A stretch of 63,753 nucleotides of DNA, the filler included, from Klebsormidium nitens (taxonomy: Eukaryota; Plantae; Klebsormidiophyceae): assembly GCA_000708835.1 (NCBI GenBank). It is 4 parts of 4 records of this genome, joined end to end, with 100 filler letters (N's around TTAATTAATTAA, not from the genome) between each part and the next. Parts side by side here need not be neighbours in the genome. Positions count along the whole stretch, not along the records: positions 1 to 31,520 come from DF237758.1; 3 more parts are not named here. One strand, written 5' to 3'. The translations under genes were made by a program, and so were the position numbers. Positions 393 through 31,428 of this stretch are shown piece after piece; within the stretch, counting starts at the first letter, position 1; every line of letters begins with the position of its first letter. Below the pieces are notes generated by a model. It saw only the letters and a list, made by a program, of their open reading frames with translations, was not told the origin of the DNA and ran no database searches.

Positions 393-2444
393 GTAAGGTG
401 GAGCCAGCGAAGGGGGCGTGCCATTCTGCTGGTAATCACAATGGCTACAATCGATTTCAGTACGATCAGAAAAAGTTTTGAACCCGCTGCCCACGCGCAA
501 AGCCGATGCGCGGATCCATTGCCAGTGTGTTTGACAATCTCCTCCAATTTCCATGCGACGCCCTAGCTCCGCCACGTGACTTCCTCGTAGGCCTGCATTC
601 AACGTCAAACCTCTCTAAGCTGTTTCTACGGATTAAGAAGCGGTTCTGTGCTTCCAAAGCCAAGCCCCGTCCTCAACAAAACGCCTCGTAGGCCTGCGGT
701 TAAACCAACCCGCTCTTTAATCTGCTTGGACGGTTTGGAATCCGGATTTGCTGCCTTGCGTGCTCCAAGCGCCAAGCCGATCCTCCATCCTCCTCAGCCT
801 GCAATAAGCAAGCTTGAGCCGTTCCTGATCTAGTTCCACTTCTTTTCCTTCTTCGCATGCAGTGTTTCAACGCGGCCGGCAGCCAGTCGACGTGTTGCAC
901 TAACGTGGGCTGCCCAGCTCAGCCGGGGCCTCTGCCGCTCTGTGCCGACGGCACTACCGGGCAGCCGCCTGTTGATCCTTAAGAAACCAGAGGTGCGAAT
1001 TTCGACTCGTTTCCGTTTCCTTTCTTCAAGCCTTGTCGTATATTTTAGATTTTGCTTTGCGAATCGTCTTTTGCGGTCCGAAAGGCTTGCAACGTGTCAT
1101 ACCCTCATGGAACACGGCAAGACTAGCTTGCCTTCTTTGAGTCTACTAGAGCACCGTCTTAGCACTACTTCTGCTCTTTTAGTGAGAGACACCGCATAGG
1201 TTGTAGCTGTTTCTATTCTGGTAATGATGTGAGGCGTGCTGTGCTGAACTTAATTTCCTTCAATTGCCCCTTGAAAAGGTGCGAGGATCAGACGCTGAAA
1301 TTGCATTGAAAAGAAAGGCTCTTCCTTCGTGTAAAATCTGGAGCTCCTAAATCCCTTCAGGTGCTAGCCGTCGCTCACCATGCTCTACCAGCCCCTTCCT
1401 TTTTTGACCGCTGGAGTTCCCTGAAAAGCTCAACCTTTTCTTCCAACTTGAAGGTCCTGGAAAGCACCGTTTTGGACAAGCGCAACTCTTCTGTCGAAAC
1501 TCCTCGAACCTCGATCAGCTCGTATGAGTCGGCTCACACTTTCAGCGCTTGTCGTGCAGCAACCCCTCCTACTAGTAATTTCATGAGGTGGCTCCGGGGA
1601 CGGGACCAGCAATCAAGGAAAGTTGGAAATACGGACCTTTTGTGTTGTTTCTTGGAGGAAACCACTTGTATAGCTATGTGTTTGCGGTGCATATAAGGCC
1701 TTGTAGTTAGTCTCAGGTGCGAGTCAAGTGCTGGCAGGACGATAAGGGCGACTGAGCAACTCGATCAACGATCACACATACCCTATACTGCTAGTCGGTT
1801 ACGGACGCCAGCTTTTCTAGTTGTGAACCCAGCTAGTTATTACGTGGCCTTAATTTAATCAGACCCAAGGCGCAGTTCCAAAGCTGATTTGGTTTCAAAC
1901 ACGAGGAGATTTGCAATGAAGATGCTTCCTCGACGCTTCCTTTTGGTAATGCATGAATCAGAGTCGCATCCAGGTTAGAAAAGGCCCGTTCTTTGCAAAC
2001 GGTGAGCATCATGCTGTGCCCGAGCTGTTTGGAGCATCACTCGGACTGTGACGATAACGGCTGGTGCTTACAATCACGGTCTGCTTCTGGTGGGTGCCTT
2101 CTCTGCTTTTTTCGCATTCGGTGCCTTCTTCGGTGCCTTCTTTGCTGAACTGTGCTTACTAATCGTGACGCGCTATGCTTACACCGATACCTTATCCATG
2201 CAGCGTACGAACAGCTGCTTGTAATACTTCTAGTATTTGGCGGCTGATTCTGTTGTGTGTTGGACGCACAGCCTGTGGCGTGTCAATCTCCTCGGATACG
2301 CCGCCGCTTTTTCCTTGTTTCTTGATGATTGAGGTTGGATCGGAGGGGCTGGCGCCTCAACTGCCTGGAAACAGCTGGTGCCACAATTGGTTTCAAATAT
2401 GCTTGCTTTTCGCAAGTCGTCACACAAGGAGGAAATCGAAGAAG

Positions 2445-2514
2445 TTGGCAATGACGCTGCATGCCTTTTGCCACATTATCAATCTAGCCATTCTGAGGGC
2501 AGTACTTGAGCCAC
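2445..2514 (-). promoter_or_regulatory. Repeat-head module copy A
   Basis: TTGGCAATGACG 2445-2456, TTGCCAC, TAGCCA, GAGCCAC 2508-2514. The repeat is seen directly; a regulatory role is inferred. Confidence 0.45.
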
Positions 2515-4061
2515 TCATGATGAAGACTGTCTTCCTCATCGTGACCGCAAAAGATCTTTAAAGACTCGGAGCATTCCCGGGCAATGACATTCGAGCTTGT
2601 CTTTCAAGTCTGCTCGTACAGGTCCGCTAACTTCCGTAAATCGAATCACAATTTTGGTTGATCGACTTGCTGTTGTCAAGATCTACCTGTCAGGCGTTTT
2701 GCGCCTGTCGTGTGGTCATCTATCTTGCAGCATGCCGAGTACTTCGTGCTTGGCGGGATCCATCGTAGTATCTCGGCAGTGACTTCACGTGCCTTCTAAC
2801 TCGTCCTCCGTTGCCTTGGCCCGCTTTCTGTTCCGGCTTCAATGAGCGTACGTGCTAGAAACGCGACGCTGCAAAAGACGTAATTCTCACCTTGCATAAC
2901 GAAGCCGTTCTTTGGTACCAATAAGGAAAGTTGACGCCTGCAAATGTCTTCAAATCAAGAAACTCGTTGCTCAAGCTGAGGCACCTGCAGCCATTTGATT
3001 CTTCAACGGCCAGTCGACCTCGCGATGGGGAGGGCGCTGGGATACTTTTTGCTTTATCCTTTTCCGCGCTTCTCTTTCTGCCTAATTTACGCTTCTTCAC
3101 AACGCAAAAGTTGTCACTGAAGAGCCACGTCTGATTGTGTCAGCGGTCGTCTGGTGCAGCATGCCTGAAGAAGGCCGGCAGTTGTACACCAAGGATGGAA
3201 ATCGGTGATTTAATCCGATTTTCCGATTATCCGATTAATATGTGGGGCCTCTTTGTACCCATCTGCGGAAGTGACCCTTCGTTCCCGTTCTACTATTCTG
3301 GACGGTAGGTCTGACAAATGTTCCGCTGGTCTTGATCAAGCTCGACAAGTTGGCGCCAAATTTTCTGCCTTCAAGTCGATTGTTTGTACCAATCGCAAGT
3401 TTTCAGTCAATGGAACTTAGGGTACTTAACGGCTTGCAATCCTACATTTGAACTTTTTTTGGTTGCCGAGGAGTGTTTAAGGGGTTGGGACCATCTACAC
3501 AGATAGGTGGCTCCAATGACTAGCTTCCTTTCATAACGAGGCGATTTGCCCATACGATCAAGCTGTTTACGAAACCCGCAGCATCTTCTATGTACGCGGT
3601 AGTATTGTGGAGCAGCAGGAATTCCTCTAAATTGCACGTATGAGTCGTGCTTTATTGTCGCACTGCAGGATTATCTCCTGCTAACGAAGCTCTTCTGTAA
3701 CGTTTTGTGCTGACATTACTTCGTTCTTTCGGCGAGGATTGCCGAGAACCCGAGCCCTGAGTGGGCAACAAGGTTCATGACTTGGTCAATACTGACGCCA
3801 CATCCTGGCTCTTTAAGGGTGGCTCTAGTTTATCTGCTACATCATTTTCTTTTCATTGGGTCAAACGACTACACAACAGTCCGCAAAGTCCCCGGATGCG
3901 GAAGTCCCTGGATGGCATCCGTTCCTGTCCAGATTCGGCGAGTTCAATCTTCTTCCGGCTTTTATCCCTTTGGACAAGTCTGGAAGTGGCGTCTCAAACT
4001 CCAGAAGGTTTTCACGTGCAGCGCTTTTCCCTTTCAGCACTAGGAACCGGAGAAACGCTAG

Positions 4062-4130
4062 TTGGCAATGACGCTTCGTGATGTCTGGCCTCGTGACGCT
4101 AGCCAAGCACTGTTTTTACTTTTGTCAGAT
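4062..4130 (-). promoter_or_regulatory. Repeat-head module copy B
   Basis: TTGGCAATGACG 4062-4073 followed by CTGGCC and TAGCCA at spacing similar to the other copies. Confidence 0.45.
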
Positions 4131-5539
4131 TGAGCTCTTTGTACGAATCCGTTGCCCACATGCAAATTAATTCAAGATTGGTTTCCCACTTTTGAAAGGA
4201 AAGGTTTAACGGAAGTGCCTGCTTTGATTGTGCGCATAGATTGAGGTGGCCACCCTCGGCGCTTGAGAAATTACGTTTTACGTTTTTAAGTGCTGTCGAA
4301 TCCTTGATCTGCATGTCAGCTTTGACGCCTCATGGCGGCTTCAATATTCCACCCGATGATCGTTTGGTGAATCTATTAGCCCGACGTTACTTGTTTGGAT
4401 TTCCGAATTAGAGCACGCCATGTTCTCAACAAAGATTCTGAACTCTCTAAGTGTCCCGTTCATTGGGTCTGCATTTCATACATAAAGCCCAGTATGCCCA
4501 ACCTGCTAGGTTTGCAAAGCACGCAGCGAGGCGTGTGAGCTTCTCTTTCCTTCGCATCACGAGCTCGCTGAATTTTCCGAGCAAGTTAGATCGATGACGT
4601 AAGCAAGTCAATATCCTTTCAAGCTTCTCTGCTCAGTGAGCCTGATTCTTTTGACGCCTACCTTCAAAGAACAGCCGACAAACAAGAAGGCGTGCGAGTC
4701 CTCTGAGTATCTTTCTCCGTAGCAAGTCCCTCTGGTTTCGCTGGAAAGGATGACATGCAAAGAAGTCACATATGAGTGCGCCCGCGCTCATCGTTGGCCA
4801 CATATCCGAAACCGGCCGGCGTGATAGAAAGACGGAGATCCGTTATACATTCTTTTGTTGGCAAGGTACGCTTTCTTTCAGGGGCGACACTGCCCAGTGG
4901 CAGCGACGCGGCTTTCAGAGACGTGTAGGTCGTTGCGATTCTGAGTCCCATGTCTCCTGCCATCAAAGCGACTGCAAGAGTGTTGCCTAACGGCTACTGG
5001 TTGCGGATCCATCGTGCCGGTGAAAATGCTCGAAAGACGGTATGCGGAATTTGTGGCTCCTCACAACCAGGTTGCCGATGGCCAATGGGGTGCGAGGCCA
5101 GATCGAGGCAGCCAGCATCATCGCCTCTTTTCTAATGAGTTGGCCAGGAAACGGCGCTAAACGGCGACCCCATATGTACGAAACGCAAATGGCGTTCTTT
5201 CTTATCTGTCTGCCACACCCTCCGGAAGAATTGAGGAGAAGCTGAAAGTACGTAACTTGATGACGAGCGCAGGCACACACGATGATAGAAGACTGACACG
5301 CCTTGCCCATAAGATTAAACCCAGCAAGAACTCGCCTCTCAAATGGACGGATGCAGCAGCTAGTTCGTCTCGAGGCCACACTCTTGAAACACGGCAGTTT
5401 CGTAAGTACCAATCAATGATCTCCACCACGGCGCTATGGAACTAGCAAGGTCATACGACAACTACGGTAGATCACCCAGCGAACCTGCGCGCTTATTTCT
5501 TGGTCGACCGTGACTGTGACTTAATGAAGAGAGTCGTGC

Positions 5540-5627
5540 CTGTACGTACGTGGCTCGCAAGGTAGAGATCGTCTCCTACGATGGCCATTAGAAGTGTGTG
5601 GCCAGAGGTACTCAACGTCATTGCCGA
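5540..5627 (+). promoter_or_regulatory. Repeat-head module copy G (inverted)
   Basis: TACGTGGCTCGC 5547-5558 (contains ABRE core ACGTGGC), TGGCCATT, GTGGCCAGAGG, CGTCATTGCCGA 5616-5627. Closely matches the reverse complement of 12718-12810. Confidence 0.5.
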
Positions 5628-8600
5628 AAGTGACCGTTGTCAGATTCTGAGAGCTTCATTAGCGTGTGAGCGAAACGGAAAAACGGCAATCTTACATAAC
5701 ATCTCAGTGTCAGCCCTTTGTCTCCCCAAACAGGATCCGCAGGCGGAGCAAGAAATTCTAATCTGGTTAGAGACGGACGTAGTACTACACAATGCAACAC
5801 CGCTGACAAGCGCGCAAGTTGCCTGTAAAATCGAGCGAGATGGCTTCGCTTGTCAGAGTAGGGATAGTTATGTCCTATCCAGGAAAGGAACAGAACAAAA
5901 AAGAAAACAGCGATCGATATCGAACAAGGCAGCCATTCAGTGCCAAAAGCAACTTACGAGGCTGCCTCGTGGACCGCATGGTGTTCACGCTGCAAAATTG
6001 TGCATGACTCGCACGGTGCGCAGAGCGAATGTTTGAAGACGGGCGCTTCCAAATCACATCCCCCCTCGTTTCGTGACAGCGTGCTTCGTCGGATCCTTCT
6101 GGCACCTTGGTTTCAGTCAAGAGAAGCAAAGTGCCCGCTTCGAACTGGAAAAGCGCTGGCATCAGTGCCTGGGATTCCGAAGCGGATAATGAGCGCGGTG
6201 GATTGCTCGTTTTGCGGCATCATCCTTGACATGTTTTGGATGTTTCTATGCATTCGGTACATTCTGCTAACCGTGAGATATAACCAACTTCACAGGGACG
6301 GTTGTTTCGTTGACGATCTGGAGGCAAACTTGGGCAGTCAGCGTGCCTCTCACCTCAGATGACTGGGATCATCTAGCATGGACAAATGGACTGCCAGATG
6401 TTAGATGGAAAGCCCAGCACGGAGGTATGTAGAGAGTCCTTATGGCCTGATGGTTTCTTAGATTTCAAGACTGGTGTCAACGATAGATAAGGAGAGCCAA
6501 CAAAGGTTGCATGGCTTCAGGACCTTGTCGACAGAAGTCGAGAATAAAATGCGCCAAGCAGACAGGCCGATGCGCGCGGCCGAATATCAAATCGATGGGC
6601 ACCGCACAATGAAGCTAGGCAGCACACTGGCCCAGAACACCAAAAACATTCAATCCGTTTAGGTCCTTGGAATCGCAAATGATGTTGATTCGATGGGCAG
6701 AACCACTTCATGCGATCTCAAAAGCGGCGTACTCTGGCTTCGTTTATTTACGGAGTCGACATTGATCTTGCCAGACTGTGGGCAATTGTATCGAGTCCTG
6801 CCAACCTAGTACGTAGTACGTCAAAACCTTCCAAAGGAGCAAGTCGAAAGAACGTGAATGAGATTGCCTAACTCTGCCTGAATGGAGGGCTCCAGTTCAG
6901 TCAACAAATGCTTTGATCTGGCAGGCTTCACGTATGAGCAGACAGCCGCCATAAATGGCTTCCATTTATCTTTTTGTTTCCGGTTCCCTGCCTTCTTTAC
7001 CTTTTACGGCAGTAGTTGCTCCTCAATAAAGACAAGCTCATATGACGGAAGTTTGAGCCAGTGTCGAGAACTTCAATGACCTGGCAACCGTACTGAAGAA
7101 AGTCGCATTTGAACCTCGAGCCCTCAATTCCTCAATTAACGGAGAAACCTTTATCCACAAAGAAACGGAGTCAAACTCCGCGCAGAAGTGTAGGTGAAGG
7201 GGGCGTGACTTTGGCGCAGAAATGTTCGTCCTCAACCGTAGAACCAAAAGCTAACCAGCCGACGAACTGCAGGACTAGCCGACAAATCCGGTCACGAACT
7301 CTTGAGTTGCCCATGTCAAGAAACATAATTGTCTGGAAAGGAGAGCCATCCCTCGGAAGGAGTTCACACTAGCTTCAGCTGTCAACAAATAGAAGTATAT
7401 GTCTCCGCTGTCATGCATCGGTACATCCCATCAAAGGTTTTGTCATTTTGCCACTTCAGTATCGATAGAGTCAAACGAAGTGTTCGTGATAGTGCTGCTT
7501 TGCGGGTTAACATACTCTTGAACTTGTATTCCCGTGCTATAGACTCGTTCAGTGTTCGATATTGTGATCTCTGATATCAATTTTTCAAATAACGGCGTCA
7601 ACTAGATGGGGTGGTGGGAATGCTCGCTGCTCGCGGCCTGTCCTATAAGGCTCTTGCATCAGCTTACACTAGCTCGGGCTTTTCGCTGTCCCCTTACTTA
7701 TGGATCCTCTCGGAGCGTCATTCCCGAATCTCTCTGTAAGTTTTTCGGCGCTCGGGATCAGTAGTTGACCCTGCAATTGATTGCCATTGCCATATCTTGT
7801 TGTGTTTTAAAAGTAAAAGCTTATTGCACTTGTTCTGCTCTGTGATGGCCCTACGTTGGCACTATTGTTGCCGTTTTACTTTGACACCAGCATGGATTCT
7901 GTGGCTGGCCTCGCTTACGATGCTCTTATGGCCGGTTGCAGACGAAGATTCCACGTTTGAGAGTAGCTCTAGGTCAATTACAACTTTCCTGCTCCCAGTC
8001 GGACCGGCAACCTTGAACCTGCTTTACTGGACCCGTTGCTCTTATGACAAGCTTGGTGCACTCGATCCTATTATCAGCTAGCGCTCATGCACTTCGAACG
8101 AAGGTGTTTTGCAATTCTTAATCTCCTTGTATTCTTCTCTACTGCTAACCGCAATCAATCTTATTGGCAGCAACTCTTGGTTGCTAGACGTTTTCCCTGA
8201 AGTTTGATCGCTCCTGAGCACTCACGGTTTGGTCCCAGATCCGATCGCAACTTCATGTCGGCAAGGACGAACCGCCAGCATGGGCTCATTGAGTGGGCGT
8301 TATCGAACCCACAAGCAATCGAACGAAGGCACCTATCCATCATCTGAACGTTAAGAATGTCGTTTGAATATGTACTTGGCCCGTCATTGTTGCTCGATCG
8401 TAATGATAAGGCGACTCCTGGGAATGATTTCTGTTCACAAGCTCGCCCTAGAAATTTGAAGAACGGTTCCAGATCACCCAGGTGTTAATGCTGCCCCAGT
8501 CTAGCTGTGAAGCTTGCTACCTTGAGGGTACGGCCAGCCAGACCCGGAGCTTCTTCGTTATCTTCATGCCCATTACATTGGTGACTCGTTTCGTCTGTGA

Positions 8601-10512
8601 AGGGCTAAGTGCTGCTTGTCTGATAGACGCTCTAAACGTGACATTGGAGCTTCTCCGACTTCTTCTGCAGCAACTTGAAGGACGATCTAAGAATTGATCG
8701 GCTGAGCTGGGTAATGCTCGCGCCGTTTTCAACCTTTTTCAGATGCTGCTCGACCTTATAGACAATGGCCACGTCGGTCACCGGTGGCCTTGAGATTTCA
8801 ATCGCTACTTTCACCATGCTTTCCTTTTCGAGCTTGCCAAACCCTTACAAAAGCAAGGTACCGCTTGCCTCAGTTGGTTTCCAAGTTGTGCGGCTGAATG
8901 AGTCGCATCTTCAGGCTTCAATCGTCTTCGAGACTTGTGCCTTCCATGACCACATGACACACCGTAAGTTGGATTGAGACGATTTTGTGGCTGTCCAAAC
9001 GAAAACACCCGCCAGCTCATGACCCAACGCGCCTCGCTTTTTTTGCTCGTATATGTTAAGAGCTAATAACACTCTATCAAATCTTGCTTTAAGTTGATTG
9101 TATGCAGGTTAAGCCTTGCAGTTCGTGTGCTGTCAGCCTCTTTGCCGGGTCCGCAGACCAAAGATACTTCTGTGACAAAGGGTTACCTCCTCGTCTGCCA
9201 AGAAAAGCTCCCTGTTTTCGTCAGTGGTTGTGATGAGTCTACGAAAGCAGATCTGCTTCAAGGTACCAGAATAAAATAGAAGTCAGGGCCTTGACACTTT
9301 TAAAGCTGCTTATGGCTCAAGGCTTTTATTTTGAAAGGCTTTGACGAAAACTGGCGAAGAAAAAAAACAAGCTTCCAACCGTTGGGCAATCGGGGTTGTT
9401 CTGAATTAGCCAGAGTACGTCTTCCGCGAGCGTCTGGACCAGTCTCAAGCTCTCTTGCGATTGGATTTAGAAGTTTTGTGCTTGCAGGAGAAGAAAACGC
9501 TTGATTCAGGTTTCTGCCTCTTTGTCGATGTGTTGCGTATCTTTGATGCGCGCTGCTCATCGTCCTATCGCTCGGTCTCGTCCTTTGGCAGGTGCTTTAC
9601 CGGTGCATTTGAATATCTTTCTTTCTCTCGGACAAGCTTTGTATTCAGCCTTGCATGTGGGAGCATTTCGTCACATTCCTCCGGCGTCAATTGCGCACAG
9701 TCGGGACTACCCAAGCCCTCACCAGAACTTGTTGGAACTTGGCTTCAATCCTCCTCTTTGACTATCCGACTTTAGTTCGGCACGCCTCGACCTTTCTCGA
9801 CTCTGTAGTTGACTTGAATCACGGGAACGCTGATGGCCCACGTTCACCATTTGGGCAGCTTGGTGCAGGCATACAAGTGTCTCTTTCGCAGTAAAGCCCA
9901 GGTTTGTTGACCATTTAAGGAGCGTCTGGATTATGGCAAGGATGACATCGCGCACGAGCGGTTCAGCGCTCACGGATGTAAGTTTCTAAGTGTGCTTGAT
10001 GCCAGCCCTGGCCAGCTGATTTTTGAGGCGGCGGCTGTTTTACTTTCCCAAACGGAAGCAAGGCCCAGAATAGATCCCCAGCGAAGTAATCACCAAAATC
10101 AGGAGTTTGTAGCTGATAGGCGCTCAAAATAAAAGCATCAACTCGGCGAGTGCGTTTAACCCTGTTCTTCCTGAAAAAGTGCGCAGCGATGACGAGATGG
10201 TGTCGGCGAGCTCATTACGTCTCAACGAATCGAACAGGTCAGCGGGTCGGATCGCAGCTGCTGCTTTTTGAGGTGTTCTTCTCAATTCTTCTCTTCGGAT
10301 TCCTGATCGACCCAACGGGCAATTTGACGGTGTGCGGCGCCATTCCCCGTGCACGTGCATACGTGTGTACTTACGGTAGGGCTTTCCCACTTCGTCCAGG
10401 TTCTTCTTTCAAGAAAAAGGGTCGGCAAAACAAAGATCAGAAACACCGTCGTTTCTGTGGCGCAATCTGAGACGCGATGCTAAGGCCATTCCCTGGCTTA
10501 GAGGGATGGACG

Positions 10513-10594
10513 TTGGCAATGACAATATACTATGGCCGCGCACTTCATTGGCCAGAACAAGGAGGTTTCTTGGGCGAGCCACGTATCGGCACGA
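10513..10594 (-). promoter_or_regulatory. Repeat-head module copy C
   Basis: TTGGCAATGAC 10513-10523, TGGCCG, TTGGCCA, GCGAGCCACGTA 10574-10585, GGCACGA. Confidence 0.5.
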
Positions 10595-12717
10595 GTGATG
10601 GCCTGCCCCTCAAATCATAATAAAAGACCAAGCAAAAACCTAATTAACAAATTTTGCATGCGAGTGTTTGCTTCTCTTCTGTTCAATCGAGTCCGCCACC
10701 CTTGGCGCTTTCTTCATGCTTCTGAAGATGGGTTTTTTCCACCCATCTTGATCCGCCTGTCAGCTTCGGATTTGACCTTGACGACCTTGATGTCGCCAGA
10801 TGACGCACTTCGGCCGGGTGCTTGTTGTCCAAGTACGGAACTAGGCCCGAGACATAATGCTTCGATGTAATCCATCTCGATCGATCCAATTCAAAGTTTC
10901 CCGGTCGTCCTGGCACTGTCTGCGTATTTCTTTTTGGAGCCCATGAGTGTGCAAGCTTCGCAGCGCAGCGAAGCACTGAAAAATGAACGTCCTTTTTGTA
11001 CACTGTGAGGGATCCTGACATGACAATTGTACTCCCGGTTCATTTCCCTTCTTTGCCGGAGAGGATTGTCTGCAAATCTGGGCCCGCCATCTAGCTGAGC
11101 AGATTTCTCTGCGGCAACATCTCGCTCGATGCTTATTCTTTTGTCTCATTAAAGTACAGCCTGTTCGAAGTTATATTGACGAAATGCAGTGGTGTCGGTC
11201 ATGATCAAGGGCTTGTTTAGACGAGCTAGCCAGTCCGCGTCCAAGTCGTCGTGAGGTCTGGAGCCTTGGAAGCTTTCGGAGCTGGCCCCAAATCCGCTAA
11301 GCTCTTGCTTGAGGTTAAGGAGAGTAGCATGAAAGCAAAAGCTCTCAAGCATAACCCGCTTGTAACATCTACGAAGCAGGCCCGCAAAAACCTTTGATCG
11401 TTCTCATTTTCGCCAATTCACTTTCGACTTACAAATCACTAACACTGCATGCTAGCTTTTCAAGCAAATTGTCGTGATTCTTTTGGCAAGGATCGTAGCT
11501 ATGAAATTGCCCATTGCCTGGGCAGAGATGAGTGCAAAAAGTTCTCGATGATGCCGAACGAGTCGCCTTCCTCGAATGGCTGGCCGGACTGGTTTCAAGC
11601 TCTTTACTCTATTTACATGCAACAGGATTTGTTTCTCGAGAAGTACTTACCGTCCAAAATCTTTCTGTCCCTCTGGCCACCGTGCTGCACATCAATAATG
11701 TGCGGAGCCCGTCGATCTCGGCCTCGTCCTTCCTGGGCGGTGCAAAGATTCACTTTTTGCTTATCTGAAAACCTTCCCAACGCTCCTGTGAAAGCACCCG
11801 TCTCTCTCTTTTGTTGCATCCGGCATTCAATGTGCAACGTCGGGCCCCCACGGCTAGACTGCCTTCACTGTGGCTACTTGCATCATGAACCTTCGACCAA
11901 CCCACGCTAGTCCAACTTTCTTCCAAAAATCCTTGATATTCTCTAAGATGATTATAATCAGCATAGGCCCCATGCATGTGATCGCCCACTTTCAACCCCC
12001 AGGGCAGCTCGCAAGGATCTCAATAGCTTAAAGTTCAGTGTCTAGGCTGAAAAAGTCAGGCTATGCTATGCCAGATGAATTTGAGCGTCCGCTTCATGGC
12101 AGGAGTGACAAGGGACATGAGAAGTTCAACCCCGATCACGTTTCTCTTGGCATGGGCATGCCAGACAATATTGATGCCAGCTTTTTGCAGATTGACAAAG
12201 CGGCTTTGCCCTCTTTCTGACCGAAGATAAGGCGCAGATTGGATTCAGCCGAGTTACGCTGTCGCAAGGCAAGGGAAGACGTGTTTCGACTGCTCCCTTC
12301 AACGTCTTCGAGGAAGTTCTCGCTGCGAGAGCTTTGGCAATTGCGCCGGTTTGTCAGCACAATTCCGCAGCAATGACGACCGTGCTGTCCATGAGGGGGA
12401 GCCTCACAGCGAGTTTGTTGGCCATTGCTGAGGCTGCCTGTTTCGCGTTTTTCATTCTATTTCCTGAAACTTGAATGTTTTACTACCCTTACAAATAAGC
12501 AATTTCAGGCTTGCTCAACTTAATAGTCGAGCATGCAAGTACTTTTATTCATCGTGCTTGCGCGCTTGTTGCGTCCATGATACGACCTTTCTTGTTTCTC
12601 CTCAATACCTTCGGGTCGCCCTTTCAAGGGGAGAGCTGGCACTCCAAGTTCAAAAGCTAGGCCGCCGTTAAGTTATACATGAGTGGGTTGCGCTTAAGTT
12701 CTGACGAGAGGAGAAGT

Positions 12718-12810
12718 TTGGCAATGACGTTCAGTCCCTCTGGCCACGCGCCTCAATGGCCAAGGAAAGACCCGGATGGTTCTTTTGCGAGCCACGTACG
12801 TGAAGGCACG
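12718..12810 (-). promoter_or_regulatory. Repeat-head module copy D
   Basis: TTGGCAATGACG 12718-12729, TGGCCACGCG, TGGCCA, GCGAGCCACGTA 12787-12798, GGCACGA. Confidence 0.5.
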
Positions 12811-14494
12811 AATTTCAAGTCGACCAGAAAAAGAGCGGGTTCGCTGATTAACATCCCTTGCTGGATTCATCTTAATGCTAGTGATCACTTCAAGACTTGC
12901 CCTGACATATGAATGGTGACTGGACTGGCATGCAGGCTCTTCAAAATTGATCAGGAGACGCAGTCTTTCAAGAACCTGCTGCGCTTCGGTTTGCGCGCCA
13001 CCGTAAATGAGAGATTTTAAGCACGCTTTTCAGTATGGGCAGGGGGGAGTGAGCCCAGCACCAATCTCGAACAGGAGACCTCTGAGACGAAACTGATCTT
13101 ATAATCCGGAGTGACGTTTCAGCGCACGTACGTAACATATGCTCCGTAGAGAAAAGGGGATTTTCCCGTTGGAAGCGACCTTAAAGTTATTCTATGACCG
13201 TCCATAATCCTGGTCCTGACTTATGCGTGCTTGTCGGTGGAAAGTCTGTGACAGGCGCCGTGCCGGCGCCGCATCAATCTTGCTGCCCTGGCCTTTATTT
13301 TGTACTCGTCCCCCATATCGTGCGGATATGACTGCTGTCCTTGAGCAACCGTTGCACGCTCAACTGGTGAAGAGAGATGAGCCCATGTTCGCCGCAGTGG
13401 CTTAAGCAATTCCGAAGCTGGTTTAAGAGGTATTCTCGCACTTCGCTTCTGGAGGGATGACTCTGAATGCACTATAGAGTGATTTTGTTGACTGTGAGGT
13501 TTGCTGAGAAAGGGCCATTTCTGGACATGCCTGGTACGTACCGCATCGCCCTTGCCAGTGATTAGTCATGTTCGTATGTGACAACCTGCTCGGCAAGGAT
13601 GAATCTTCTCGGCTTCCCGGTTTGGGAGCCCACTTGTATCCCATACGATTGTGAATGATGCCGGCAAGAAAAGCGCCAACCCCGTTATGGACTGAACGTG
13701 AGCAGGGGACTCGAACAAATTCTTTTGGCTCCAGATGTTTGCCTTTTGAGCTTCGTTCCTTTGTTCGCAAGTCTCCATGGATGGAATTCTGGTGGCTCAT
13801 GATACAGAATGATGTTCAAGCGGACGTTATTCGGCTGCCAGGGAAGTTATTCGAGAAGTTTGACATGGCCACTGGCAATAGCTGGCCCAGATGATTGTCA
13901 AGCTCCTTTCTTCTGACGAGGCAGCTTCTCACATCACTAGTAGTAGGTCTTACATAATTAAGAGAAGGTCCTGAGGCATTTTCCAACTTTCACTGTTCTG
14001 TGGGACTGCCCAAGATAATTACTCCTGAGGTCTGCTAGCCTCTCGCACGGCCTGACTTTTTCAGCAGCTAGCAAGCGTCAGTAATTCTTTCCAGATACTG
14101 TAATTACGTTACAACTTTGTGTTCGTCAAGGAATGGAGTAACCCTGCGCGCACGGCCCCGTGTGGGCAATCAGTACTAGACACAATCCTTAAATGACGCC
14201 ACACCTGATTACTGGTTTGCGCTCTTTAGCTAGAGAGGGAGCTCAAATCCCCAAGTAGCCTTCGTTGGGCTGTGCCCTGAGCGACTTCGCAACACCCTGT
14301 AAAGCCTCGGTCGTGCAGTGTTACGCATCTCAGGTTTCTTTGTGGTGCATGCTTTTTAAGAGGAGGTTTCGTTTTCCAGCGCTTCTTCCCCTGTAAAAGT
14401 TCTGGCGTGTCAGGCCTCTGAAGCTTCTCAGACGATTTCCGTTTGAATCGACATAGGGTACGCTTTGCTACTTTAGTATGTAAACGGAAGACGC

Positions 14495-14570
14495 TTGGCA
14501 ATGACGCTACGTAGGTGCTTGGCCACGTCCGCTTTGGCCATAGGCTTGACACTTGAAAATGTCCCCGAGC
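14495..14570 (-). promoter_or_regulatory. Repeat-head module copy E
   Basis: TTGGCAATGACG 14495-14506, GCCACGT 14522-14528 (ABRE core on -), TTGGCCA, CGAGCC. Confidence 0.45.
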
Positions 14571-15173
14571 CGCTCAACCAGGGCATAAATGCAATTACCT
14601 CGGCTGGGCCCCCCAAAATGGAGAACGACGTCCCGCACTCTCGTCGTCAGATTTTGCATACCGATCTAGTGCCCATGTGCATTTCTAGAAGTCGGATCGC
14701 CAAAAGAATAGGCGTGTATGTAAAATAGTGCTTTGATTCTTATTATTTGTAGGTCTGCTGCCTTCGGCGCGTTTACTGATTACGTCTTGCGTGCCGTTGA
14801 TTACTGGACTACCTAAATGTTTTTGGCGCCTGACAATTAGTTCGAGTTCCCCTAATGGGTCACTCCTGTAGATTTCTCGATGGCAGGCCTCCCGGATGAC
14901 GGTGCTCCATCACACTTGCGTAAGTTCTTTTGTTTACTAGTCCAAAGTATCACATTTGTTAACCTACTTTTCATTCTGAGACCACGAGCTGCGTAGGGGC
15001 CCGCTAATCTTGACCGCAGGGGAGATTTTAAGTCGGAACCGGTTGCCCTTGTCGGCGGCGGAACAACGGAACTCCAATTGATTCCATAATTATATTGGCA
15101 TGTATTTAATTACATGGTCGAGGCAATCATGGAGTACGCTCGGCGGACTGACCGACCACCGGACTGTGACTTT

Positions 15174-15270
15174 GGTGGGGTTAGCAGGGGGGTTAGGGTG
15201 GGTAGGGGTAAGCACATGGCGGAACGACTTAGGGTTAGGGTGGTCGTCATCTTTCCTTAGGGTTTTTAGC
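15174..15270. repeat. Degenerate telomere-like G-rich repeats including a telo-box
   Basis: TTAGGG at 15193, TTAGGGTTAGGG at 15229-15240, TTAGGGTTT at 15257-15265 (AAACCCTAA on -), plus GGGGTTAG and GGTAGGGG variants. Confidence 0.5.
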
Positions 15271-17547
15271 ACGAGGTCGTTCGATCTAGATCTCTAAAGC
15301 TTGCAAAGTTCATGACGTCAATGAATCTCTGTATCGGTGAAGTCTCTGAACTGCTGAGGCTGCTGGTTCTCCCGCCGCTTGGCGTCGCAAAGGTGAGCCG
15401 GCAGTGCAGTGAAATAGCTTCTTATAAACTTCTCCTACTCTTCTATTTTACTCTCCGCTTCTCGTTTTACCTCTTGTCCCCCTGAAAACGTTGTCACGCG
15501 AATTCTATCAAGTGCTCTAGCGCCCATCGTGTGCAGCATGAATGAGCCTGCCTTCCGGCCGTGGAAAATCACGAACCCAATTACGAGAATTCTTGGCAAC
15601 GCTTTCTTCAAGTGGGCGTCTGCCATTCGTGGTTTCCTCGGCGACGTTTGGTCGCAGACAACCACTTTGTGTCGCTGCGGTTCTGGATGTCATGACCTTC
15701 CGAGCGACTGAAAGAGTGTAGCCAATAGCGTGTGGTCGCCGAATAGGACATGTCCTTCGACGCCCTGCTTACGGAGGAAGAATCAAGGGACGAAGGCTTT
15801 GGCTAGGATACAAAGCTTTGGCTTGCCAAGAGTATTCCTTTCTGTTTCTTAACGTACATGTATACAATCGAGGTGCTCGTCCGCGTCTTCCCGGGCTCCA
15901 CCATTTAGACTCTCTGCTGTTGGCAGCCTCATCATTACTCCCGCCACTTAAGAGCTCGAGTCGTCTACTTCAATCTGTGTCCGCTGTCGAGAGCAGAACC
16001 CTCTCAAACCTTTCTCCGCCCTTTCGGCGCATTAAACTACGTCTCCTGCTCGAACCTTAACGTAACGGTGTCGGTTGAGTTGGGCTCGTTTTGACGAACC
16101 GATCGGCCTCACTCGGTCAAGTCATCGCGTGAGATCTGAAGCGCCCAATTGGAAGCTTTGATATCCGTATGACCCAAACTTCGCCAAGCTTTTGCTGAAG
16201 TTCAAGAAGCAACTAGTGTACAAAGCGGTACAGCTCTCAACCATAACCTGCTTGCAGGGTGACCTGCTTGTGGGGTCAACGAAGCAGGCTCGACCAAAGC
16301 TTTTGTATTCTTCTTTCTCAGAACTCTCATTTCGTGCAGCTGCAGAATATCATTTCATGTTCGTTTGAGCGGTTTGACATACTTTCTGTTGGCAGGGAAT
16401 GTAACTGTGGATTGCCCACCGTCGGGCAATAGCAGTACCGGGAAGGTTGCAATGATGCCAACACACGCACTCCTCAAAGGCCAAGCTTTTTGTCAGGCCC
16501 GAGTTCTCTTCTATGTAACGATATGTACAACATTGCTTTCCAAGGAAAACTTTGAGCGTTCACAAAAGTATACCAGTGCCTCTGGTCATGTGCTGCCTAC
16601 CAATGCTTCGTGGTGGCCGTCGTCTTGAACTTCGACAGCTTCGTCCTTCTCTGGGCGCTTCGAGAAATGTCTCCTTACCTTCCGAGAAAGAGCCGAGGCC
16701 CCCGTGAGAGCACGTGTGGTTTTTTGCATCCGGCGATAGTAGTGCACAATCTGGGGGGCCCTGTCGCATTGTTTCACGGTGGGTGCACCCCTCGACCGAC
16801 TTGGGGAGTCCAACTCTCGTTCGGAAGGCCTTTATGTCCTTGAGGATTGCAACCACCACTGGCCACAGGCAGTTGATAGCCCGCTTTTGTTCTCAGGGCA
16901 CCCGCGAACGAAACCCGCCGTTGGGCTTTCAAAGTGTCTGCGTTTACAAGGCCAGGCTCCACAATACCAGACCTTCGGGGGTCCGATTCATGGCAAGTTC
17001 AACAAAGCGCTTTGCTTCTCGACCGCAGGCAGGCGCAGATTGGGTTCACCCGAATTACGCTGCCACAAAGCAAGGGACTAAAACCTGAAAACACTAAGAC
17101 CCTATGTGGTTTGACGCTCCCGTCATCAAAGGAGCACGGCATATTGCGCCAGTTGGTATGCAAATGTTTTCAGCGATGACGATCATGCTGTCCGAAAGGT
17201 ACGCCTCAAAAGGGTTTTCTAACCAGCGACCGAGGCTGCCTGTATTATCGGACATTGTTTCGCGAGTCAGTGCTTCTCTTTCCCTTTCGGGTTGCGCGGT
17301 TTTGTTCCGACTATCCTCAGTCCGACAGGCGAGTATCTTGCTCGACCCGACGGGCAAGCGTGTCAGCACGTTGCAACGTGCATTCGCTTCTGTAATGTTC
17401 TTTTTCTTCTCCGCGTTTCCTGCTTCGGAAGGAGGAAGGGCTGACACTTTTTATAATTAGAAAGTCGCAGTTCTTGGTTTCATTGAGAGCGCCCAGCTAA
17501 CTCTGACGCCATTTCAGCGGCGCTGATCGTCTCACAAAAGGACACGC

Positions 17548-17615
17548 TCGGCAATGACGTTCGCACAAGTCTGGCTGCATTGGCCATTGCGGGGTCTTCT
17601 TCAATCGGAGCCATC
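17548..17615 (-). promoter_or_regulatory. Repeat-head module copy F
   Basis: TCGGCAATGACG 17548-17559, CTGGCT, TTGGCCA, GGAGCCA. Confidence 0.45.
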
Positions 17616-19034
17616 ATGCACTAAACCACAGGATTGTCATTTCTTGATACGGGGTCACAGTCCACGGGCCAAGAAAAGTGCGGGCTTGCTGTAAGAGAGG
17701 AAGAATCTCAGCCCAGTGCTGAATTTCAACGGGATGGACCTTCTAGTGACGACTCTCAACCCTGCTAAACTTCGGAATGGACCTTCTAGTGACAGATTGA
17801 ACCACATGCCGTAATTTGAACTTGGGCCTTTGAAAGAACGTTTGTGATTTAAGCTAGGTGGACTGAGTCTGCTCGTGCGTCGCGGCCCGTTTTGGATAAA
17901 CTGGTCTTAGGGGATCATCATTGGCTGGCTACGTCCGTGCACAGAGAGTGGGCCGAGTGCTCATGAGGGTAGTACTCAATAATGAATGCTTTGACGGGAG
18001 GTCTGTTGATGGGCAGTTTCAAACCAGGAAAACAATGAGTGAGATACATGAGGCGGCATGATGTTGATCGGCCTCATGCGACCGCCTACTATAGCTGCAG
18101 CGCCGTAAACCGAGCGCGCGGCCGCAAGTGCGCTGCGCCCGGCGCCGTCCGCGCTTGACCGTACGGTGTCGGACTCGATTGTGACCGTACATCCCGGTAC
18201 GGTCGACAACTACGAACTTCGGAATTGAATTTTCCGGCCTAGCGCGCCACGCGCCCATACGCGCGCAGAAGGCGATGGTTCGGCTCCAGACTCCGGCCCG
18301 ACTGGTGCATGCACCCGGCTTTCCATGTTCAGTGGACCGGTTGGTGCAACCGAGGGTTCACGGCACTTGGCCAGACAGGGGTGCTGCAGCTAAGTAGGTG
18401 CTTGCACTCTCGAGGCCCAGATCTCGTCAAGAAACCGAGCACAAGGCTCTTCGTATTTCTCATGAACTTAGTACAATGAAATGGAGACGGCCAGGTTGAG
18501 ATAGCCAGGGCGTGCCAGAGGAAGCGAGTTTTTCAGCCTGACAGGGTGGTTCATTTGGTTGAATTGATCAGTCTCTGTGACGCCCATTTCAGACCCCTTG
18601 GACTAGAGTGGATTTAATAGCACCTAGGTGCCTAGGGATCTCCTTGATTTCTGTATGTAGACGCGACCTGGCAATAGGTAGATTGACCAGATTCAGACCG
18701 GTACGCTCACTAGCACTGGCTTGCTAGTGAGCGTCGAATAATCATCATTCTGCTCCCGTCTCAAATCAGCAGATTTCACGAACTAAGATCCACTTGACTA
18801 GGTACACCTGATCACCCCCGGCAGGCGACATGAATCTGACTGGCTCGCTTCACTTTCTTCTGCCCCTTGTCCAGAATTTTCAGCGGTACATAATGCAGTC
18901 TTTCCACCAAACTCCTCTTCATTCCATAACCTACTCTCCGCAGCTTATCTGCACGAGCATCGTAAGCGAGCAGTCTTACCTCGCCTTCCCGTTCTCAAAT
19001 CTTGAGATTGTCCACTAGGAAAACAGCTGACGTC

Positions 19035-23358
<4,324 letters not shown>

Positions 23359-29154: not shown

Positions 29155-30122
29155 TTATCTGAAATTTGTTTCAGCCGAGTGGTAAGCCGAGATTGAGCGT
29201 GGTGACTTATTCAGGACGAGTGAATGGAAGAAGTGGGCCGCCTTGGCGTCTGGGTTGTACCACGCAAACCCCCGACCGCCCTGGACAGCATTTACATAGC
29301 GTCGTAGCCCGATTTTGTCGCTCTTCCAAACGGTTTTCAAGCCTGCACCCTTGTTGAGGGCGGACTTAACCTGTTTGGCCTTCGTTTTAGGCAGGATCAG
29401 AGCGTAACCAAAGTCGATGATTGTTACCTTTCCGGTCTTCTCGTTAAAAACATGTTTCCAGCGTGCATATCCGCATGAATAGCTCCCAGCAGCCAGAGCG
29501 TGAGGATTGCTCGTTCAATGACGGTAAACTGCACGCTGGTCAGGTGTTTTTCGTGGCTCACGAACTTGTCGATTGGCTGCCCTGGAGCCTCTCCCATCAC
29601 CGTAATGAATGCCATCCCCATCCTGTCATGGCCCTCCAGAAGGCCTGCGTAGAAGATGGGCGGCACCACGTCACTGCCACAAACCTTGGAGCCTCGGAAC
29701 GTCGTTTCCTGGTTATGCAACCATGATTGCAACTTGCACTCCCTCTGGCATTCATCAATGTCGTCATAGTCATCTAGCAGATGGACCTTGATGACCACGG
29801 AGGAGGGCGCCATTTTAGGGTTCCCAATCACGTAGGCGCTGAGGCACCGAAACAGCTGATTGTGGAAGGCTGCGGGCGCCTGCTTGGCCCGGTAGGCACG
29901 GCCGTGGCTTCCGGCCGAGAGGAATCCAAGCTTGCCCCCGAGCTTCAGCTCCTCCAGGAACCTCTTGCCTCCACCCTCTGTCGGCCGGAAGTCGGAGGGA
30001 GCAAGGTGGCCTTTGGAAGGAATCGTGGCGTTCAGAAAGGGAAGAGTGACCCTGTTGCGCTGGCGTCTGCCCTTCACCCAGTGGCTGTAGGGGCCTCCGT
30101 CTGCAGGTGGGCTCAGATCCAT
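29155..30122 (-). pseudogene. Viral-type protein kinase (~322 aa) with one 1-nt frameshift
   Basis: LSAGSHGRAY (Gly loop), VVIKV, ECQRE, HADMHAGN. One base missing from the A5 run at 29446-29450 shifts the frame; restoring it gives GNMFFNEKTGKVTIIDFG (DFG at 29407-29415), which joins ORF 29155-29340. Confidence 0.85.
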
Positions 30123-30200
30123 TGGTTATAGCAGAGATAATGATCCACGTTCGTGCCAGTCACTTTCGTTTTTTTTTTTCACCTTAGTGTATTGGTGAGT

Positions 30201-31428
30201 ATGTCAGGAGGTCTTCTGTCTTTGGTGGCTCAGGGCGCCCAGGATGCTTACCTCACGGGAAGCCCTCAAATCACGTTCTTCAGGATCGTCTATTGCAGGT
30301 ACACCAACTTTGCTTTGGAAGCCATCGAGCAGACATTCAATGGCGCGGCTGATTTCGGCCGCCGCGTCACGGCCACGATTTCTAGGAACGGGGACCTGGT
30401 GACCACGATGTATCTGCAGGTCACCCTGCCGGCGCTGACTTCGACCACGACGCATACGGAGCTGCGTTACATCAACTCGGTGGGCCACGCCCTCATGCGA
30501 AACGTAGAGGTGGAGATTGGAGGTCAGAAGATCGACAAGATCCCATCCGAGTACATGGAGATCTTCCACCAGCTGTCGATGCCCGAGGAGAAGAGGAAGG
30601 GTTACGAGGAGATGGTCGGCCAGCCGAGCAACAGCGACACGGTCCCGTCTTCCAACAGGACCACCGCTGACACGGCCCTCTTGAACCTCAATCACTCCAC
30701 CACGCTTTACATCCCGCTCTTCTTCTGGTTCAACCGAGTGCTAGGGAACGCTCTGCCGCTCATCGCCCTTCAATATCACGAAATCAAGGTCAATATTGAA
30801 TTCCGTTCCCTTAATGAGCTCTACAGGTCCAATGTGGCTGTTTCTTTCAACCCGGTCCCGTCAATCGTGAGTGCCTCGTTGTACGTCGATTATGTTTATT
30901 TAAATACGGACGAAAGGAGAAAATACGCATCTTCTTCGCACGAATTTCTAATAGAGCAGCTCCAATTTACGGGTTCAGACACTTGGAGCGGCGGAACGGG
31001 CACCAGCAAGATCCGAATGTCCTTCAATCACCCCGTCAAGGAGCTGATCTGGACATGCACACCAAGCGCCAGCGCATCTGCCGACCCCGTTGCCGGCAAC
31101 ATGTGGTTCGACGGCGGAGAGCAGAATTCGGGAACCGACCTGATGACGACCGGAAAGATCCTGCTCAACGGCCACGACCGCTTCCAGGAGCGGGCCGCCC
31201 CCTACTTCCGCCTGGTGCAACCGTACCAGCATCACACCAGGATCCCCAGTTGACCGCTTCATCTACGTCTACAGCTTCGCCTTGAAACCGGAAGAGCATC
31301 AACCATCGGGAACTTGCAACTTTAGCAGAATCGATAATGCGGCGCTCAACCTCGGCCTCGACAGCGACGACCCTGTCAAGATCTCCGTTTATGCCGTCAA
31401 CTACAACGTTCTACGTGTGACCTCGTGA
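30201..31428 (+). pseudogene. MCP: NCLDV major capsid protein (double jelly-roll), ~408 aa after correcting one frameshift; C-terminus truncated
   Basis: MSGGLLSLVAQGAQDAYLTGSPQITFF, RYTNFALE, FGRRVTATISRNGDL, LPLIALQYHE, EFLIEQLQFTG, FNHPVKELIW, LLNGHDRF, YFRLVQPYQHH. An extra T at 31250-31251 creates TGA; removing it continues SDRFIYVYSFALKPEEHQPSGTCNFSRIDNA...YAVNYNVLRVTS*. Confidence 0.96.

Follow-up and report, generated by a model that had tools for sequence, protein, structure and literature searches.

Diverged non-coding units sharing a conserved core on a Klebsormidium nitens scaffold

Repeated non-coding DNA has been described in nuclear, mobile-element and viral settings, and a locus in the streptophyte alga Klebsormidium nitens can be compared with each of them. 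This locus, an array of eight strongly decayed copies of a ~2-3 kb non-coding unit, forms the first 17.6 kb of a 31,520-bp scaffold (DF237758.1, assembly GCA_000708835.1). The scaffold is the first part of the window, the whole stretch of 63,753 nucleotides (filler included) under study, and the copy counts given below for the unit, for its short conserved core and for a second repeat family, fam2, cover this one scaffold. The array is real, non-coding, ancient and orphan, and it is located in the nuclear DNA of the alga.

Among known systems, the macrosatellites and relic tandem segmental duplications of eukaryotic nuclear genomes resemble the array in their kilobase-sized non-coding units arranged head to tail, in one local inversion and in partial units. 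While typical macrosatellites are homogenised by concerted evolution, the copies of the array are only 45-55% identical, no array was detected by Tandem Repeats Finder, and only a short core has been kept. Clusters of non-autonomous mobile elements, such as Helitron-type tandem arrays or 5'-truncated retroelement copies, are alike in their diverged bodies, their conserved subterminal block, one truncated copy and the lack of coding capacity; the array differs from them in having no terminal inverted repeats, long terminal repeats (LTRs), poly(A), target-site duplications, sharp ends or enzyme remnants. Some algal giant viruses also carry families of non-coding repeats. The repeat regions of coccolithoviruses and phaeoviruses share with the locus a repeated non-coding element and a conserved short word, and the scaffold also contains a giant-virus capsid gene. 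The array differs from these regions in that it consists of open reading frame (ORF)-free, host-like DNA, is separated from the capsid gene by an intron-containing gene of host type and has no match on 80 viral contigs. Finally, the words of the core resemble sites of plant basic leucine zipper (bZIP) factors, namely the G-box/abscisic acid-responsive element (ABRE)-like ACGTGGC and the as-1-like TGACG, a likeness confined to words of 5-8 nt. With such ACGT-core and TGACG cis-elements the core shares TACGTGGC, found on its reverse strand in three copies (C, D and G), and TGACG, present in seven of the eight.

Cores and unit bodies

A sequence-only reading of this DNA had drawn attention to an 11-mer, TTGGCAATGAC, and to its excess over chance, and both observations have been confirmed. 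The motif is exact at 2445, 4062, 10513, 12718 and 14495 (n = 5, all +) and is found with one mismatch at 17548 (+), 5617 (-) and 24059 (-), the last of these without surrounding homology. These eight matches, five exact and three with one mismatch, compare with 0.76 expected, and none of 100 shuffles reached eight. The most over-represented 9-mer on the scaffold is GGCAATGAC.

Around the motif lies a core of ~60-160 nt, of which the scaffold holds exactly eight copies. What withstood decay in all eight is a stretch of ~60-110 bp with short words at slightly variable spacing, in the order GGCAATGAC(G), 8-14 nt, TGGCCNC, 7-10 nt, TGGCCA, ~20-30 nt and GAGCCACGTA. In leave-one-out profile searches, every copy was recovered: core A at 2392-2553 (+, E 1.2e-8), with a second GGCAATGAC at 2580; core B at 4045-4109 (+, E 1.2e-7); core G at 5676-5497 (-, E 2.7e-17); core C at 10480-10639 (+, E 1.8e-9); core D at 12679-12830 (+, E 3.4e-23); core E at 14484-14543 (+, E 6.5e-8); core F at 17529-17612 (+, E 4e-7); and the degenerate core of a partial copy, G' (-, GGCGATGAT..., E 5.5e-5). 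No ninth core was found on the scaffold, the next best leave-one-out match having an E-value of at least 0.16. In four copies the gaps between the words measure 12/9, 12/10, 9/9 and 14/8 nt; as these are not multiples of three, they fit modular binding sites and not an exon.

Four units, C, D and F on the plus strand and G on the minus strand, are homologous along ~1.75-1.95 kb at 45-55% identity. Unit D (11039-12987) and unit F (15919-17800), both full length, were matched to each other by low-stringency blastn, at 60% identity over 1027 nt between 11138-12101 and 16021-16995 (E 1e-37) and at 67% between 12195-12441 and 17002-17243. At the same low stringency, unit G (5353-7300), full length and inverted, aligned with both D and F, including 5958-6183 against 12405-12150 of D (63%, inverted). 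Unit C (8851-10798, full length) was retrieved by a profile of D, F and G (nhmmer, E 3.1e-43 over 9326-10613), and F was likewise found by nhmmer. Since G contributes to the profile, its own profile match exists by construction, and the independent support for this unit comes from blastn and from the leave-one-out recovery of its core. The homology reported by the sequence-only reading thus extends into the bodies and is not confined to the motif, and the four-way alignment also shows the short strings that it had noted as common to C and F.

The bodies themselves have diverged close to saturation. Pairwise divergence among C, D, F and G amounts to 0.67-1.0 substitutions per site (Jukes-Cantor), with a transition/transversion ratio of 0.8-0.9, and the mean all-pairs column identity is 0.37 vs ~0.25 in shuffled controls. 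Some 13 short islands exceed 0.45 identity in the four-unit alignment. Conservation of the core greatly exceeds that of the bodies, and the core persists in copies without a recognisable body. At 12370, and at the homologous sites of C, F and G, there is a second conserved island, ~350 nt upstream of the core, which reads CAGC(A/G)ATGACGA followed by CATGCTGTCC; the word GCRATGACG occurs twice per unit in these four clear units.

Outside the four clear units, the array is more fragmentary. With the four-unit profile, short matches were obtained at A and E in addition to C, D, F, G and G'. Unit A (1732-2553, +) combines its core with a weak body trace at 1732-2099 (profile of D, F and G, nhmmer, E 0.0029). 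For B, only the core is recognisable, the body expected at ~3300-4045 being not alignable, and E is likewise reduced to its core (four-unit profile, E 5.6e-4). G' (5078-5346, -), which directly adjoins the full copy G, retains only the 3' part of the unit (four-unit profile positions 1459-1732, E 1.9e-12). The sequence-only reading had proposed at least seven diverged units filling the first 17.6 kb. The number stands, with eight copies, but alignable body is restricted to four of them and, weakly, to A. Nor do the units strictly fill the region, as ~1.5 kb at 7300-8850 and other spacers are unique.

Six of the eight cores are on the plus strand, the two on the minus strand are adjacent to each other, and successive cores are spaced by 1.6-3.1 kb; C and D follow directly on one another, at a period of ~2.2 kb. 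In unit orientation, the AT skew is -0.08 to -0.09 in all four clear units, the inverted G included.

The second family, fam2, is ~450 nt long, and its three copies follow cores A, B and E at a distance of 420-755 nt on the downstream side. Copy 1 (2864-3276, +) is ~420 nt downstream of core A and matches 4524-4908 (nhmmer, E 1.4e-6) and 15295-15588 (E 1.6e-5). Copy 2 (4521-5007, +), ~460 nt downstream of core B, matches copy 3 at 15250-15742 with an E-value of 6e-12. Copy 3 (+) begins a further ~755 nt beyond core E, on its downstream side, and precedes the body of F by ~200 nt. Copies 2 and 3 correspond to the further blocks that B and E had been said to share. The succession core-fam2-body-core is found from E to F, and also from B to G once the ~5.05-7.3 kb segment is turned back, a recurrence indicating that at least some of the spacers are homologous too. 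A degenerate TTAGGG telomere-like cluster (15180-15262, +) stands at the start of fam2 copy 3 and is absent from the other two copies.

Coding capacity and RNA structure

The units do not code for protein. The longest ORF of the array has 164 aa, and no single stop-codon reassignment to an alternative genetic code restores long ORFs. Among 250 stop-free pieces from 1-18.5 kb (100 of at least 70 aa and 150 of 45-69 aa), no Pfam match was obtained at an E-value of 0.01; applied to 18.5-31.5 kb, the same procedure recovers the capsid and LHC (chlorophyll a/b-binding) domains. By tblastn, the units compared with each other gave weak scores that were similar for the two strands and for every frame, with no frame preference. 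Substitutions showed no three-base periodicity in any unit pair (p 0.35-0.96). Over 1-18 kb, GC content does not vary with codon phase; GC codon periodicity is present at 22-23 kb, in the 29.4-30.1 kb ORF and in the capsid gene. Along D and F, identity stays uniform (50-70%) and no blocks resembling exons stand out. A word search with ORF 5868-6359 returned no protein relatives.

For ORF 5581-6033, a full HMMER scan gave a single match, P0121 (E 5.6e-12), which was rejected as an artefact because six identical weak matches (26% identity, ~30 bits each) had been summed. P0121, a predicted protein of 544 aa, is built of seven near-perfect 76-aa tandem repeats and is evidently a translated satellite; it inflates multi-domain HMMER E-values.

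A trace of coding might still be sought on the reverse strand of the unit, where the array would represent pseudogenes of a lineage-specific tandem gene and the core its promoter and start codon (ATGGCC in five of eight, with V/I-I-A 12-13 codons further on). ATGGCC or ATGGCT is indeed found at the same place in five of the eight cores, in frame with the V/I-I-A codons in four, and it is on this strand, at a corresponding place within the unit, that each of the four clear units has its longest ORF (94-164 aa). Against this, the other four cores are frameshifted or have no ATG, and the third positions of GTC-ATT-GCC are all invariant, which argues for a constraint on DNA and not on protein. Neither an exon/intron pattern nor codon periodicity is seen in the substitutions that separate D from F, and the translations look random, with neither Pfam match nor homologue. 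A coding exon in the core was also rejected after translation of both strands in all copies, as frames are not kept and spacing changes are not multiples of three. A pseudogene origin is decidedly improbable. The gene family in birth-and-death decay, one of the candidates of the sequence-only reading, is disfavoured by the missing ORFs, codon periodicity, frame-specific conservation, Pfam matches and protein relatives. The central point of that reading, an unrecognised array of diverged units in which no known protein or mobile-element hallmark is recognisable, is supported.

Similarly, the units do not make structured RNA. No Rfam match was found at the gathering score, E-value mode giving only a chance match to snoR35 (E 0.92), and no tRNA was detected. 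The only predicted consensus helix, a 6-bp TGGCCA...TGGCCA hairpin, was discarded as it shows no compensatory change, and the fold energies of the core on both strands were no better than those of shuffles (z -0.4 to +2.1).

Duplication, mobilisation and selection

Shared orientation, fairly even core spacing, the recurring fam2-body-core order and the equal AT skew make local tandem duplication the most economical history, and a single inversion suffices to explain the two adjacent minus-strand cores. We infer that an ancestral non-coding unit of ~2-3 kb, made of a fam2 segment, a body of ~1.6 kb and the core, in that order, may have given rise to the array through eight or more head-to-tail duplications. 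The segment at ~5.05-7.3 kb, which carries G and G', would have been inverted later, while the copies would have drifted to their present identity with deletions, so that three of them keep only the core. That the core was kept against a near-saturated remainder, also where the bodies are gone, points to selection on a DNA element. The core could accordingly have been held as a protein-binding cis-element, in a promoter- or enhancer-like cluster; its TGACG and ACGT cores are of the kind bound by bZIP factors, and each unit may owe a non-coding transcript to it. This combination of a relic tandem duplication, one inversion and a selected protein-binding core is tentatively preferred here, and in our judgement it is nearly as likely to be right as wrong.

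Several observations weigh against it. Most inter-unit spacers are unalignable within the scaffold although the bodies align, which simple neutral tandem decay does not predict, and for the ~1.5 kb spacer noted above no relative was detected on the scaffold. The 5' and 3' limits of the units are fuzzy. As to the cis-element, the putative function is founded on conservation together with a likeness to plant ACGT/TGACG elements. The unalignable spacers would fit independent insertions, or a weak constraint on the bodies such as that acting on non-coding transcripts.

Independent insertions are the essence of a different explanation, in which an undescribed non-autonomous mobile element has left a cluster of copies that have since decayed. 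Its core would then be a subterminal cis sequence for mobilisation, kept by active master copies, and the bodies would represent different subfamilies. Besides the contrast between bodies and spacers, this explanation is in line with the partial copy G' directly adjoining a full copy, with the existence of two structural types, with and without fam2, and with a core conserved far better than the bodies. However, apart from the truncation of G', no trait recalls a retroelement. Consistent terminal inverted repeats were not found at unit ends, no LTR-like long flanking direct repeats, no poly(A) or A-rich 3' ends, target-site duplications or sharp ends at the units, and no remnants of transposase, reverse transcriptase or integrase in the 250 ORF pieces (Pfam). 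A common orientation combined with even spacing is unlikely to result from independent insertions. The CpG observed/expected ratio is 0.93, i.e., without the depletion that long-silenced, methylated elements might show, and methylation-driven decay was rejected on this ground. A search with the 21-base core pattern returned 4 IMG/VR loci and 91 metagenome loci, about the chance number by a rough hand estimate; in this weak test, none of the loci showed similarity to the unit or fam2 profiles beyond the pattern itself, and they were dismissed as relatives and regarded as chance matches. A mobile element is an unlikely source of the array, though a contender to be reckoned with, and the units could belong to a dispersed family.

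Returning to tandem duplication, a stronger version can be formulated in which the cores are a lineage-specific element under purifying selection. Such an element would be a composite platform for binding, in which the invariant word GGCAATGAC is combined with a pair of TGGCCA palindromes and a word with an ACGT core, and every copy would stand at the head of a unit of non-coding transcription. Instead of dead DNA, the locus would represent long non-coding RNA (lncRNA) or regulatory genes clustered in tandem in an early-diverging streptophyte, which we regard as quite improbable. The earlier reading had also named an lncRNA cluster and an undescribed mobile element; both are possible, the former also as a regulatory cluster, and the sequence of this scaffold does not distinguish between the two.

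The import of the locus depends on which of these holds. If it is only a decayed duplication relic, it has little significance beyond the repeat annotation of the K. nitens genome. The survival of ~60 nt of core in eight of eight copies amid near-saturated drift is, in contrast, a signature of function. Were the core a true binding site or promoter, it would offer a way into the study of cis-regulation, or of non-coding transcription, in the charophyte algae, from which the origin of land plants is reconstructed.

Neighbouring genes and the viral alternative

The longest ORF on the scaffold, at 30144-31250 (+), encodes a major capsid protein of nucleocytoplasmic large DNA viruses (NCLDV; Pfam Capsid_N, 5.9e-52, and Capsid_NCLDV), and its best matches among solved structures are chlorovirus capsid proteins, PBCV-1 included. 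It is 100% identical to K. nitens KFL_008090050, and a second contig of the alga carries a paralogue with 91% identity. Relative to this paralogue, the phycodnavirus-like gene is full length (30201-31425, +), with one frameshift at ~31251. The annotated model KFL_008090050 (266 aa) omits 30789-31028 of the gene, treating this segment like an intron. NCLDV-like genes have been reported earlier in Klebsormidium (PMC5294986).

Head to head with the capsid gene lies an ORF of 233 aa (29427-30125, -) with strong codon periodicity. It gives a weak Pfam match to ABC1 (E 0.04), and in the ESM Atlas it is placed next to small atypical protein kinases, among them a cluster from Nucleocytoviricota. Judging from these similarities, it is probably a viral kinase-like gene from the same insertion as the capsid gene.

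With a phycodnavirus-like capsid gene and a likely viral kinase-like ORF on the same scaffold, the array could be thought of as the non-coding repeat region of an endogenous giant virus whose capsid gene is at 30.2-31.4 kb. Yet 17 kb without an ORF over 165 aa is unlike giant-virus DNA, and the array combines this ORF-free state with a host-like composition, viral-gene character being limited to ~29.4-31.5 kb. The array and the viral insertion are 12.5 kb apart, and between them stands the host-type LHC gene with its GT introns. The capsid gene has acquired only one frameshift, which indicates that the viral part is young relative to the array. In addition, the ~1 Mb of sequence from 80 viral loci that flank capsid homologues contained no match to unit, fam2 or core, and a viral origin of the array was rejected on this basis. 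We consider it very improbable. The scaffold also documents a young giant-virus capsid insertion beside ordinary host DNA.

The LHC exons, with GTGAGT-type donors, are found at ~21.1-22.2 kb. The region of this gene (20833-22346, +) contains short internal duplications, 20833-20888/20921-20976 (91%), 21317-21388/21412-21483 (81%) and 22148-22192/22302-22346 (80%), the last pair being a duplicated exon end together with its splice donor. On the left flank of the array, a word search with ORF 90-563 returned no relatives. A palindromic 9-mer resembling the cAMP response element (CRE), CTGACGTCA, occurs five times over both strands (223, 19027, 20421, 22899), always outside the array and near the gene-bearing part of the scaffold, and may be a common promoter word in the K. 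nitens genome.

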